Both the position numbers and the translations under genes were made by a program. The notes beneath the pieces are model-generated. The model had not been told where the DNA came from, searched no databases, and worked only from the letters and a program-made list of their open reading frames with translations. A stretch of DNA of 64,000 bases, taken from contig NC_043011.1 of the NCBI RefSeq assembly GCF_006345805.1, forward strand, positions 65,918,464-65,982,463. Direction: 5' to 3'. Source of the stretch: Octopus sinensis. Taxonomy: Eukaryota. Shown here piece by piece: positions 22,019 through 43,259 of this stretch. The number at the start of each line of letters is the position of its first letter. Position 1 is the first letter of the stretch.

Positions 22019-22118
22019 GCACAGCAATCACTAACATTGGAGAGGATTGTGCCAAACTCGCATATATCACGTGCCACAAGAGTTATAGTGAATATAAAGC
22101 ACATAAAGATGACTGCGA
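22019..22118 (+). CDS. G2 exon 2 (TAITNIGEDCAKLAYITCHKSYSEYKAHKDDC)
   Basis: atttttag acceptor, gtaagt donor, 100 nt phase 1 to 2, ends GACTGCGA exactly as G3 exon 2. Confidence 0.88.
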
Positions 22119-24190
22119 GTAAGTATGGTATTACTATCATTAAATTAAAATAATTGAAGATGCTAATATAGACTTATACAAAAAGGTAATAACCAAAATG
22201 TATGCACAAACACTTAAATATATTCATCGATATAAATACACAGACATATATATATACATATATATATGCACACACATATAATTCGTGAATTTTGATATTA
22301 TACTTTTTGAGGAAGAAGGAAGATCGAAGCTGCGTTCGAAGAAGTTACTTATGACATATTGCACGAATCTTTAGTTCGGTTTGTCCAAGAACCTGGAGTT
22401 GTCTGCGCAAATATCTGCAACCGTCTGATGCAGCAAGAATGGAGGCAAATATCGCTCAGCTGCCGCAACGTCCCGCAATTAATTACAACCGAGACCGACT
22501 TTTTGTTCGTTGCTTATGATATCTGACTGGTTACCCAGCGATTCGGTTTCGAATCCTCGTTACGTGTTGATGCAACGTAAACGAGAACTTTGAGATTGTT
22601 CTTTTCTGCTATTCGATGAGGAAGTTACAAACAAATCGTATTACGCACGTGCAGACTACACCATTTGAGTTCTTTAACATTGGTATTGCTAGTATGTATT
22701 TAATATAGAAACAATACACAATAGGTTTGTCCATCTGTGTGTCCGTCTGTTCGTCTCTTTGCCTGTTCCCTCTTCACGGCCAGACGGCTGGACTAATGGT
22801 TATGATATTTTGGTGGTTTACAAAGACGGCCATCGGGAAACTTTTTAGCATTAAAAAATCTGACAGTATGATTATTTCGCTGATGTCAATTCTTGAATTG
22901 GTAAACCGCATTCGCATTTTTATTAAGAATTCACTGACCACGAGTAACTCTGGGTTTTCCTCTTGTAACTCGTGCCTATATCGTAGATACGAAGGGGGTC
23001 GCGAGGGCAGTTAATAGCAAAAATAAAATGGAAAGTGTGTGTCAGTATGTAGAGTGCGATTATTTAGTGTTTATTGAGACGTGTCAGTTACGGGCTGGAT
23101 GCAAAACGGCCAGTCGAAGCGGCTGTTGTTTACATCTCAGTTTTGTCAATCAAAATAAATGATGGTCACGGAACATTCAGACACTATTCTCATGGAGCAT
23201 TGAGAGGTAGCTTTTAGCTTTATTATTTGCATCCCTAAAGATCCTCTCATGCAGTCATAGCAGACAGTGTCAGATTGGAGATCGTGTTTCTGTATTTATA
23301 AACACCTTTGTTATGACTTCCCTCACTCATGTTATGCCTCTATCGTAGATAGGGAGATTTACTAGCATAGATCTAATACAAATATACACACACTCATATA
23401 TACATACATACAAATATATATGTATGTATATATACATGTATTCATGCATATATGCTAACGTATATACATATATATATATATATATATATATATATATATA
23501 TATATGTAAATGTTTGTATGTATACACATAAAAACAGGAAGTTTCAATGGAAAATCTATTAGTAATATTAATTCACAATTACATATGGTAATAAGAATTA
23601 CTAAGAGTTACATGTGTAACGATTATCTTAATAACAATTCTGAATTAAACAGAGGATTAAATAAGGATTATCGCACACTTGGTTGAAGAATCTATGTTAA
23701 CAAAGAAAATTGTATATCTTATAGAAGTTATGTTAGGAACTTTGAGAAATACGTTTATTTTATTCAACTCAGAAATAATACGTACTTAATAAATGTAAAT
23801 ATATGGGTCGACGGCTGCAATTTCATTTTAAAAGGTTTTAAATATACCTACATGTACATACATACAAACATTCCAATATAAATACAGACACACATACAAC
23901 GTACGTGCAAAAATGTGTGTGTTAGTGTGTGTATGTGTGTGTATGTGTGTGTATGCATGAATGCATGTATGCATCTGAAGTTTTACTGATAAACTGTTCC
24001 CACATGCGACACATTGCATTTAATATAAAACATTTTTTGATGACGAATCCATGATGATTCCCACAAAAACAAACCGATGGTTACATAGTTTATAGATTTC
24101 TAGTTATACCTACATCAATGTTTCATTTCGCTGTTTACAATTTCATTACCCAATTGGTGTATTATATTTCCTGAAATACGTATTTTCCAG

Positions 24191-24275
24191 GGTTGTAGAA
24201 ACGTTTCTGAAATGCTTTAATATCGTAAATGTGTCTCCTTGTTACAAGATCTATAAAGGAATGCAAAGATGCCCA
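24191..24275 (+). CDS. G2 exon 3 (VVETFLKCFNIVNVSPCYKIYKGMQRCP)
   Basis: tattttccag acceptor, gtaagt donor, 85 nt phase 2 to 0, family Cys spacing. Confidence 0.88.
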
Positions 24276-25378
24276 GTAAGTAGTCATCACTATAAATATA
24301 GCGGAAGATTAAGTGAATTTGCTTCTTTTATTCGATGCCGCATTGATTTTAAACTGGTTCTTGGTGAGAATTATCTTATCCCGATCAAGAAATTTATATA
24401 TCTCAAAATTAAACAAATCGTATTATGTAAGAGCAGACCACACAAGTTGAGTTCTTTAACAATGGTATTGCTAATATATATTTGATATAGAAACAATACA
24501 CAATAGGTTTGGAGAACTTTGCTGATTTTGAGGCAGGATGTAAGTGTATATGTTACCTCACAATATCAATCAAGTCGATATACACGAGATAGATTTGAAA
24601 CTTGTTTGTGAAGGACGCTACATGTTATATGTTGTGACTTCTAATTCAAAAATGAAGCAGATAAGCGAAATTTTCTACACATGTTTCATCACTTTAATGG
24701 TATTGGAAGTCATAGAAATGGTTGCGAAGAATTATTCATGAGAAAACAACTCTATACATATGTCCTAGTTGTTCGTTAAAAATAACAGAAAGAAAGTTAG
24801 CTTTTTCACACTGGGTTTTACGTCCAACATAAAGTTAAGGTAAAAGTATTTTCCTGGGCATGCGCTTCGGTTCCAGACTTTATAAAATTGATACATGGTT
24901 GTTTGAGCATAACCAAAATTTGGACTGTGTATTCTACATACATGAAACGACACCACAGTAACGTCTGATATGTTTTATAATCTTCTTCACTTGTAGCAAA
25001 GATCCTAAATTAAATAAATATTTTAATAATATTTTTAAGTATATTAACATTATTAAGGACAATTCAACGATTAGTTACTCAAATAAAACAGACCTTCAAG
25101 AAAAATATGTATTATGTTTTATAATTGCGAAATTTCAATATGTTTCAATGATATAAATTTCCTTCGGTAATGAACTACGAAACTTGCTGCAAGAAGGTAC
25201 ATGGTAAACGACATTCTACCCTTTGATAATCAACTAATGCACAGATTACGTTAATTACGTTTTTCATAACGAGCCTTGTATGATGTAATTGTTATCCATG
25301 TCATTGCGATACATTTGTCGAGATACATTCAATTCAAATTAAGTGTGCTATTTCAATTTCAAGATTTTTCTTCTGTAG

Positions 25379-25417
25379 GTACAGGCTCCCAAGAAAAGCT
25401 CTTCTAACCAAGATAAG
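25379..25417 (+). CDS. G2 exon 4, linker (VQAPKKSSSNQDK)
   Basis: tttttcttctgtag acceptor; donor gtacgtgacttc resembles the G3 exon 4 donor gtacgtgatttc. Confidence 0.7.
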
Positions 25418-25481
25418 GTACGTGACTTCTTTGTGACCGCGCCAGTAACAATATAATTTTCTTACAATATACAAGATGTCA

Positions 25482-41879: not shown

Positions 41880-41990
41880 CAATAATAATAAAAATAAAAA
41901 TAATAATAATAATAATAATAATAATAATAATAATAATAATAATAATAATAATAATAATAATAATAATAATAATAATAATAATAATAATAA
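41880..41990 (+). repeat. (AAT)n microsatellite
   Basis: Directly visible. Confidence 0.95.
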
Positions 41991-42609
41991 TCCGGCTATG
42001 GAAAATGAAGAAGAACATTGTACCAATTATTGGCTCCTAGGGGACAGTATTAGACGTATCAAGAGGATTGTATATATATATACAGATTAGTTAGGTACTT
42101 AGTTTGAGGCACAATAATTTAGTAAGGCATTATCCATACAGTTTTAAAATAAGGTGAGTAAAGTAAAATCAACATAAGCAACAGGATATCCGGTGGTGAT
42201 GCAATACGCTCGTTTCAAGCGACTCCATTTAATTGAACAATGCAAACATTACATCAATTTCAATGCAGAGCAATCCTAAGCTCCAAAAATATTTTGATAT
42301 ATACACATACATACACACACACACACACATATATATATATATATATATATATGCATACATACATACATGGATTCATGTCTCCAACAGATGCGGGACACCT
42401 CCCAGCTGCCGTATGTCTAAGCTAAATGCGAAATGTAGCACTCCCCATCAATTTTTTAAAGACAGTCCTAGTGATTCATCTCTCCTTAAAATGTATCAAA
42501 ACGTGAATTAAGTGTTTCAGGTACCTTTGAAGAAATTATTTTTGGAAATGAATAAGTTATTGTCAAATACATAAAAAAATAACAGATTTATTTTTCTTCC
42601 AAATTTTAG

Positions 42610-42709
42610 CAACAGCAGCAGCCGAACTCTCGTCATGCGAAGTAAATGCAGAATTGATGTGTCCCAGGGAGTATGCGAAATATAAATCAGCAAAGGCACC
42701 CGACTGCGA
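42610..42709 (+). CDS. G3 exon 2 (TAAAELSSCEVNAELMCPREYAKYKSAKAPDC)
   Basis: tttttcttccaaattttag acceptor, gtatgt donor, 100 nt phase 1 to 2. Confidence 0.88.
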
Positions 42710-43174
42710 GTATGTAATAAAAATAAACTCGTATCTTCCATAATAGCAATCTTTCCGATCTAAATTCACATTCCACCAGGATCGATCATGCCTTTCATCG
42801 TGAAATGATTGATTCCGTTGCCATAACTGTCTAGACCTGTTTTCGTATTTTGCAATATCTCTCATCCATAAGGCTTGCAGTTTTTCAGCTTTAATAACGC
42901 ACTTCTGTTTTGATATTCCATCGACAATTTACACAGCTGCAGCCATCTGAGAGTATTTAAAGGAAAAAGCCAATCATTCCACTAGAGTTGTCAACTTTCC
43001 AACACGACTGTCACGACGTCAATTTGATGATTGCGTAACGCATGAAAGATCACATGGATTTCGATATTGCAAAATTGCTCAATAATAATTATATGTCATG
43101 AAATATGGGGGAAATTTCGAAGAAACAAGTATAAAGACATGCTAAATTTCCATACTAATTTTCTTTTCCGCTAG

Positions 43175-43259
43175 GGGATATAATTTGTTTCTGGCATGCT
43201 TTGAATACGTGATCCAATATACCTGTTTTGATGATTTCAAAAAACACCACCCATGTAAC
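43175..43259 (+). CDS. G3 exon 3 (GYNLFLACFEYVIQYTCFDDFKKHHPCN)
   Basis: ttttcttttccgctag acceptor, gtaagt donor, 85 nt phase 2 to 0. Confidence 0.88.

Follow-up and report, generated by a model that had tools for sequence, protein, structure and literature searches.

The Ly6/uPAR proteins are encoded in tandem clusters and occur in soluble and glycosylphosphatidylinositol (GPI)-anchored forms, built on a beta-rich three-finger fold with 8-10 cysteines. Attractin of Aplysia and the Er pheromones of Euplotes are small, helical and highly variable in sequence, with three disulfides, and membrane-bound isoforms are made in Euplotes by alternative splicing. In CHCH proteins of the twin Cx9C type, which are made without a signal peptide, each of two antiparallel helices carries one Cx9C motif. 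In conotoxin genes, a conserved signal peptide and conserved introns are combined with a hypervariable exon that carries the cysteine framework (PMC3862624). Here, we describe a stretch of 64,000 nucleotides of the Octopus sinensis genome (NC_043011.1, positions 65,918,464 to 65,982,463; hereafter the window) which, on the evidence of its sequence, holds part of a tandem cluster formed by a small gene family, with three paralogues in it: G2 and G3, which appear complete, and G1, which appears damaged. We consider it probable that G2 and G3 belong to an undescribed family of pre-proteins of about 100 residues, in which a helical scaffold stapled by disulfides, and either anchored at the cell surface or set free through alternative splicing, presents a surface that varies freely or diversifies.

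The genes share one exon layout (Table 1), in which a signal peptide exon is followed by exons of 100 nt and 85 nt, a Lys/Ser linker exon of 27-33 nt, and a last exon that encodes a hydrophobic tail and the stop codon. The exon 1 candidates consist of 13 codons and one base. Exons 4 were located by DNA similarity between G2 and G3 and to exon 4 of the O. bimaculoides gene LOC128249931 (locus L002), an alignment that was also how exon 4 of G2 was recognised, and exons 5 by a hidden Markov model (HMM) of the tail peptide and by alignment of orthologues. Once joined, the open reading frames (ORFs) of G2 and G3 encode 105 aa and 97 aa, respectively, and poly(A) signals of the AATAAA/ATTAAA type (at 26014 for G2 and 47454 for G3) follow the stop codons by ~90-110 nt; motifs upstream of the genes are also common to the paralogues. 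The segment singled out by the initial annotation (22019-43259) runs exactly from the first base of G2 exon 2 to the last base of G3 exon 3, both at canonical splice sites. A three-exon gene with exon 3 as its terminal exon was rejected, given that exon 3 closes in phase 0 at a GTAAGT donor that is conserved and that two more exons lie downstream.

Table 1. Exons and related segments of the gene family. Positions are those of the window unless locus L003 of O. bimaculoides is named; a slash marks the exon-intron boundary.
Feature	Position	Strand	Content	Splice sites and phase
G2 exon 1	13335..13374	+	start codon and signal peptide MNNASLFIFLLLV, plus 1 base	donor G/GCAAGT
G2 exon 2	22019..22118	+	100 nt; TAITNIGEDCAKLAYITCHKSYSEYKAHKDDC(E); Cys1-3	in phase 1, out phase 2; tttttAG/ ... 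GA/GTAAGT
G2 exon 3	24191..24275	+	85 nt; VVETFLKCFNIVNVSPCYKIYKGMQRCP; Cys4-6	phase 0 end on GTAAGT
G2 exon 4	25385..25417	+	33 nt; APKKSSSNQDK, Lys/Ser linker	donor GTACGT
G2 exon 5	25859..25918	+	ITFAAVTLNSFVIILLKHK and stop codon; hydrophobic tail; exon 5 HMM E=7e-6	
G3 exon 1	40174..40207	+	MLSLYILFLLL, plus 1 base	donor T/GTAAGT
G3 exon 2	42610..42709	+	100 nt; TAAAELSSCEVNAELMCPREYAKYKSAKAPDC(E); Cys1-3	
G3 exon 3	43175..43259	+	85 nt; GYNLFLACFEYVIQYTCFDDFKKHHPCN; Cys4-6	donor AAC/GTAAGT
G3 exon 4	44786..44812	+	27 nt; TGMKSSIHE	donor GTACGT
G3 exon 5	47298..47345	+	ITLNSMFLITFLVTL and stop codon; hydrophobic tail; by tail-peptide HMM and orthologue alignment	
G1 exon 3	3223..3307	+	GYYIFIICFSPKVNHECYDVLDKSHSCS; same peptide in O. 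vulgaris CAI9735849.1	
G1 tail-exon homologue	4068..4115	+	ISKICYVLPKFLLLR*	no AG acceptor in that frame
Orphan exon 1-like segment	9335..9374	+	MSKHSLFILILIF, plus 1 base	donor G/GTAATT
G2 orthologue exon 1	L003 42736-42697	minus	MKTLSLFIFLLLV; 469 nt from exon 2	donor GCAAGT

Both complete genes have orthologues in O. bimaculoides. Window positions 12.9-45.3 kb are collinear, in reverse orientation, with O. bimaculoides locus L003 (~76-88% identity per aligned block), where G2 and G3 each retain five exons with the same phases and frame, every donor and acceptor, and the six cysteines. The tails of the orthologues read ITFAAVSLDLLVIVLLKHN for G2 and MTFNSVFLIAFMVML for G3. Intron 1 of G2 is a GC-AG intron whose GCAAGT donor is also found in O. 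bimaculoides; it measures 8644 nt in the window (13375-22018) and 469 nt in the orthologue (L003 42696-42228), a difference explained by a copy of a long interspersed nuclear element (LINE; ~14893-16913), other fragments of transposable elements and a 400-nt (TA)n array. A second ATG of G3, upstream at 40168 (M(TM)LSLYILFLLL), is not kept in O. bimaculoides. We also observed that the orthologues (L003 minus strand 31693-42736) lie antisense within LOC128249942, an annotated gene whose isoform X1 spans 58 kb, and that the 100 nt preceding the start codon of G3 (window 40060-40167; L003 35740-35850), which hold an ATG-TGT-AAG-TGA mini-ORF, are better conserved between the two species than the coding exons. 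Upstream of the paralogues, a TATA-like box and a motif resembling GTCAAATAATT recur.

The likeness among the exons extends beyond the window. A profile of three peptides from the window, searched against 1.84 billion representative proteins, returned four matches, all from Octopus (E=1.8e-14, 3.6e-9, 5.2e-6 and 1.5e-4): CAI9735849.1 of O. vulgaris and LOC128249931, LOC128249941 and LOC128249942 of O. bimaculoides, each named 'uncharacterized' or 'hypothetical'. In BLASTP comparisons among the 1122 plus-strand ORF fragments of the window, exon 3 of G1 matched that of G3 (E=1.3e-7) and exon 2 of G2 matched that of G3 (E=0.004); together with the profile matches, these values indicate that the likeness exceeds chance. 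A word-indexed protein search, which is evidently insensitive for this family, returned nothing for G3 alone or for an alignment of 11 domain sequences, and only the three O. bimaculoides proteins already known for a full-length alignment of 10 sequences. The taxonomic range therefore derives from one search with a weak three-sequence profile, and neither a description of such a six-cysteine family nor the locus names were found in the literature. On this evidence the family appears to be undescribed, and known so far from Octopus alone.

HMMs of the exons recovered at least 12 members on both strands of three Octopus loci (L001, L002 and L003). Their cysteines follow the spacing C-x7-C-x13/14-C-x8-C-x8-C-x9-C, and in an alignment of 10-12 members only these six residues were invariant; the motif F-x2-C-F was nearly so, with both Phe present in at least 90% of sequences. 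Identity among paralogues was 18-40%. This bears out the claim of a fixed exon and cysteine scaffold with variable sequence between the cysteines, first made from the three window genes; the hand-aligned identities on which it had been based (over the 28 codons of exon 3, G1-G3 10/28, G2-G3 8/28 and G1-G2 6/28) were reproduced exactly, and the exon 2 pattern C-x3-A-x3-C-x3-Y-x2-YK-x2-K...DC has only two occurrences, at 22048 and 42636, when the window is translated in all six frames. The exon 3 pattern, F-x2-C-F followed by C-x8-C-x9-C, is found in the window at 3236, 24204 and 43188, and no further copies of exon 2 or exon 3 were detected there by regular expressions and HMMs.

The annotated proteins begin with a signal peptide, as do G2 and G3, and share with them the six-cysteine spacing, F-x2-C-F, the K-S-S linker, the hydrophobic tail and, at the gene level, exons of 100 nt and 85 nt in the same phases. 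However, at 25-38% identity they are paralogues of the window genes rather than orthologues, and they have no described function. When mapped on L002, the RefSeq protein of LOC128249931 resolved into five exons, with the 100-nt and 85-nt exons in the phases of G2 and G3, a 27-nt exon 4 (NLGKPSSVK) and a tail exon reading ISLQAVFLHSLVVQLLMQK. This gene also has an alternative, tail-less ending (PFA), so that isoform X1 carries the tail and isoform X2 does not.

To describe the domain encoded by exons 2 and 3, we turned to structure prediction with AlphaFold2, which reached a mean confidence (predicted local distance difference test, pLDDT) of 77.8 with three sequences, and a pLDDT of 87.0 with a predicted template modelling score (pTM) of 0.74 with seven. 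The latter model places helices at residues 2-16, 18-26, 33-45 and 48-56, with Cys1 in helix 1, Cys2 at the kink between helices 1 and 2, Cys3 just before helix 3, Cys4 in helix 3, Cys5 in helix 4 and Cys6 in the C-terminal tail of the domain. The 55-60-residue domain is thus predicted to be an all-helical, four-helix mini-domain. The initial annotation had suggested a possible helical hairpin with C1-C4, C2-C3 and C5-C6 as putative disulfides: its helical part agrees with the model, which has four short helices rather than a hairpin of two, and Cys4 and Cys5, the C-x8-C pair, fall in two different helices. The predicted fold was neither beta-rich nor matched to any described family. Foldseek searches returned nothing with E below 3, whether either model was compared with the PDB or the better one with BFVD; sequence searches of the PDB, started from a single protein or from a profile, gave no match; and in Pfam neither partial nor full proteins scored above threshold, PAR1, Cauli_VI, CM2 and Med17 being sub-threshold chance matches. 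A relationship to the GDNF-receptor/GAS1 domain was likewise not detected: Pfam, which includes GDNF (PF02351), and the PDB sequences gave no match, and Foldseek gave none with E below 6, to GFR-alpha or any other solved structure.

These results set the family apart from the structural analogues introduced above. Like attractin and the Euplotes pheromones, the octopus proteins are predicted to be small, helical and cysteine-rich, and are variable in sequence; unlike them, they have a different cysteine spacing and gave no match in Foldseek or sequence searches against the PDB. With the CHCH proteins they would share cysteines set on helices and pinned by disulfides, assuming the pairing that we infer, but they start with a signal peptide, have x7 and x8 between the cysteines, and are predicted to form four helices, with Cys4 on one and Cys5 on another. 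Ly6/uPAR proteins resemble them in combining a signal peptide, a small disulfide-rich domain and a GPI-type tail (putative in the octopus family), and in their tandem clusters with soluble and, in octopus putatively, anchored forms, whereas the octopus domain is predicted to be all-helical with six cysteines, and Pfam gave no match at E up to 10.

In these proteins, Cys6 is followed by a C-terminal stretch of 25-42 residues made up of a Lys/Ser-rich stretch (K-S-S or K-S-S-S), a polar spacer of 4-8 residues and a hydrophobic segment of 11-16 residues, which ends 0-3 residues from the C-terminus and whose best 11-residue Kyte-Doolittle window scores 2.1-2.9. Position, phase and hydrophobicity of the tail are all kept in G2, G3, both orthologues and the three annotated paralogues. 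GPI-anchored proteins generally start with a signal peptide and end in small omega-site residues, a short polar spacer and a hydrophobic stretch, and the tail described here fits these rules in general. By this rule of thumb we regard the tail as a putative GPI-attachment signal, with a minimal transmembrane anchor as the alternative. In the reading that we favour, three disulfides would staple a small helical core and leave most other positions free to change. The tail, as GPI-attachment signal or minimal membrane anchor, would hold the domain at the outside of the cell; a soluble form would arise when the tail exon is skipped or replaced. The variable surface could bind a fast-changing partner, for instance a conspecific cue, a gamete or a microbe.

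The initial annotation had likened the pattern of fixed cysteines and variable surface residues to that of toxins, pheromones and allorecognition proteins. Given the Lys/Ser linker and the hydrophobic tail, the product looks membrane-tethered and less like a simple secreted toxin or pheromone. That the family nevertheless encodes soluble secreted ligands (a pheromone carried by water, or toxins of venom or saliva), with the hydrophobic C-terminus as a removed pro-segment or the mark of a minor isoform, seems unlikely to us, although several observations would suit it: conotoxin genes are known for a fixed cysteine framework whose exons outpace the conserved introns in divergence (PMC3862624), the choice of cysteine codons is position-specific and the same between orthologues, and LOC128249931 has its tail-less isoform. 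Against it stand the conservation of the tail exon in all the genes just listed, the absence of a propeptide between the signal peptide and Cys1 (the predicted signal peptide ends only ~5-8 residues before Cys1) and the lack of similarity to toxin families in Pfam or the PDB. The comparison with conotoxin superfamilies is divided in the same way. Exons of the G3 domain diverge twice as fast as introns, as in those superfamilies, but this is not so for G2 (17.3% vs 16.7%), and the octopus family differs from them in its predicted helical domain, its five exons, the missing propeptide and the anchor-like hydrophobic tail; with venom families in general it shares no similarity of sequence or fold (Pfam, PDB, Foldseek). 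A role as toxin, pheromone or allorecognition protein remains an analogy.

Comparison of the orthologues revealed different rates of change in the two genes. The domains of the G2 orthologues are 70% identical and those of the G3 orthologues 50%. Exons 2 and 3 of G3 diverge by 27.5% (50/182) against 13.1% in flanking non-coding DNA (105/799; Fisher p=8e-6), and the proportion of non-synonymous differences (pN) in the domain is 0.247 against 0.131 (p=7e-4). For G2 the corresponding figures are 17.3% and 16.7%, a non-significant difference by Fisher's test, with pN at 0.167 in both domain and non-coding DNA (Fisher p=1.0). Outside the scaffold, G2 changes at the neutral rate and G3 at about twice the neutral rate. 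The idea of rapid change thus holds for G3, whose exons exceed the non-coding rate, and not in the same sense for G2, which keeps to that rate without rising above it. The G3 orthologues are 50% identical within flanking non-coding DNA that is ~87% identical, so that the variability exceeds what old paralogy would give. Non-synonymous divergence (dN) was 0.30 in G3 and 0.19-0.22 in G2, and synonymous divergence (dS) about 0.65 (0.5-0.7) on ~30-31 synonymous sites in G3 and 0.22-0.24 in G2, where intron divergence was 0.17-0.20 and the ratio dN/dS (omega) ~0.8-1.0. Overall, dN was at or above intron divergence, and dN/dS for the two orthologue pairs lay at 0.5-1.0 rather than far below 1. None of the outcomes that the initial annotation had named as refuting its idea (a beta-rich fold, a match to a known fold family, a dN/dS far below 1) was thus observed, and the idea stands. 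We consider it most likely that rapid surface change is tolerated by the scaffold and, in G3, apparently selected for.

The excess in G3 exons might also stem from a mutational process (ectopic gene conversion from a paralogue, or hypermutation targeted to exons) and not from selection on the protein. The dS of the G3 domain, 0.65, is raised along with dN, and both exons are affected, as such a process would have it. We nevertheless find this explanation rather improbable. Identity between the G3 orthologues and the known paralogues does not exceed 38%, which means that no donor for conversion is visible, and the 465-nt intron between exons 2 and 3 is well conserved (14% divergence), so that two separate short conversion tracts would be needed. 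Moreover, the Nei-Gojobori method (NG86) inflates dS where many codons carry two or three changes. In the G3 domain 11/57 codons do so, against 2.7 expected at the intron rate, and the high dS is probably inflated in this way.

A further possibility is that G2 and G3 are duplicates in decay, or without function, whose variability reflects lack of constraint and neutral drift. It would agree with the omega of G2 and the equality of its exon and intron divergence, with the absence of both genes from the annotation of both species, and with the signs of erosion in the same cluster: G1, whose exons 1-2 lie upstream of the window, has a LINE copy (1-2946) in intron 2, no exon 4 that could be found in the window and no in-frame acceptor for its tail exon, from which it is probably decaying or has changed its C-terminus, and the orphan exon 1-like segment at 9335 has no exon 2 or 3 of its own that could be found in the window. 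Yet in neutral simulations at the observed non-coding divergence, the probability that an ORF and six cysteines are kept was 0.003 for G2 and 0.01 for G3, with an extra factor of 0.05-0.11 for the 16 splice-site bases; the joint probability for the ORF, start and stop, six cysteines and 16 splice bases was, leaving indels aside, ~2e-4 for G2 and ~1e-3 for G3. These low values imply that the scaffold is under purifying selection. The sole change of coding length between orthologues is an in-frame 3-nt indel in G3 exon 2 (97 nt in O. bimaculoides), and drift cannot yield exons that evolve above the neutral rate, as those of G3 do. Decay of G2 and G3 is accordingly a poor explanation, and we give it little credit.

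Several points weigh against the surface-displayed, diversifying scaffold that we prefer. The rates come from one species pair, and the fold from AlphaFold2 runs on G3 exons 2 and 3, the better of them with an alignment of only seven sequences. Outside the scaffold, G2 is statistically indistinguishable from neutral evolution, and the high dS of G3 brings its dN/dS below 1 and would allow a local mutational cause. As for the anchor, several tails end in K/H/N, and one isoform extends 21 residues past the hydrophobic stretch. Finally, neither the searched protein collections nor the genes called in L003 include G2, G3 or their O. bimaculoides orthologues; expression of G2 and G3 is putative, and both genes are predictions from sequence. 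Taken together, the earlier interpretation of this locus is partly supported.

The position of the family within O. vulgaris bears on how its units are organised. The first 19 kb of the window are collinear with O. vulgaris chromosome OX597831.1 (locus L001) at 97-98% identity. There, CAI9735849.1 is a 302-aa 'hypothetical' model that spans 89 kb (L001 10001-99175) and contains the exact exon 3 of G1, exons 1-2 of G1 and a further paralogue, G0. It is a chimera, in which exons from G1', G0 and G1 are fused to a stretch derived from a transposable element and to the G1 tail exon read out of frame. G1' is a second copy of G1 that lies in a segmental duplication of ~10 kb and ~96% identity (L001 15303-25122 vs 90545-98690), and the three exon-site differences between the two copies are all non-synonymous (3/3). 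That the units are instead repeated domains of one large gene, as this model, which joins pieces of at least three units in a single product, would suggest, is very improbable and was rejected, given that every unit starts with a signal-peptide exon and ends with a stop codon and a poly(A) signal of its own, that the phases do not tile (the exon 2 and 3 pair enters in phase 1 and leaves in phase 0), that the O. bimaculoides RefSeq models are single-unit, and that the 302-aa model includes out-of-frame pieces and others derived from transposable elements.

Counterparts of G0, G1 and G1' were not detected in the orthologous O. bimaculoides interval, which indicates that the cluster gains and loses genes. 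Such birth-and-death turnover adds to the interest of the family. Many genes of cephalopods are lineage-specific and have no known role, few of them have been dissected, and here an orphan family can be given a clear anatomy of five micro-exons, a predicted six-cysteine helical domain and an anchor-like tail. It also exposes a gap in annotation, which misses G2 and G3 in two species and contains a chimeric model in O. vulgaris. The domain would be a candidate for a new small disulfide-rich fold, and at least one member has exons that diverge about twice as much as its introns while its cysteines stay fixed, which ranks among the strongest sequence signatures of adaptive change. If expressed in gametes, in skin or suckers, or in immune cells, the family would offer a direct handle on the recognition biology of octopuses. 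A more far-reaching version of this reading has, in our view, only an outside chance: a cephalopod-specific family with a fold not in the PDB, GPI-displayed and under strong diversifying selection, that would serve self/non-self, gamete or microbe recognition in octopus independently of Ly6, Ig and lectin systems, with exons that evolve faster than introns, possibly through exon-focused mutation.

A divergent exon 2-like member (VSMSHCNLMA.QRCPASYYGYNN.DAFCR) was recovered at L001 871-939 and 58610-58678 and at L003 46450-46379. At 93% identity between species it is not fast-evolving, and no exon 3 was found for it.

The rest of the window is largely repetitive. Its G+C content is ~35%, (TA)n, (CA)n and (AAT)n microsatellites are abundant, and ORFs of LINE-type reverse transcriptases and of Penelope-like GIY-YIG proteins are present; tRNA and Rfam scans gave no matches. 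A non-LTR (long terminal repeat) retrotransposon with endonuclease and reverse-transcriptase domains is present in two frameshifted copies, ~86% identical, one inside G1 intron 2 (1-2946) and the other inside G2 intron 1 (14893-16913). Between G2 and G3 lies an intact reverse-transcriptase ORF of 987 aa (31060-34023), with partial or diverged copies at 34511-37202 and 37538-38803, all three flanked by long (AAT)n arrays. Downstream of G3, LINE fragments at 54500-55420 and 62060-62980 are 95-100% identical at the protein level, suggesting recent transposition or duplication. The segment 58000-61300 is a G+C-rich island (52.7% against the ~35% background) with a strong positive GC skew; it resembles a Penelope-like element because the 458-aa ORF on its minus strand has a C-terminus of GIY-YIG type, and a further GIY-YIG ORF is located at 51954-52484. 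Lastly, a tandem array with a period of ~198 nt occupies 52700-53320, and its translated units are ~88% identical (VVIGQN.DDV..CLTKPPNETTGQNRIQT...).

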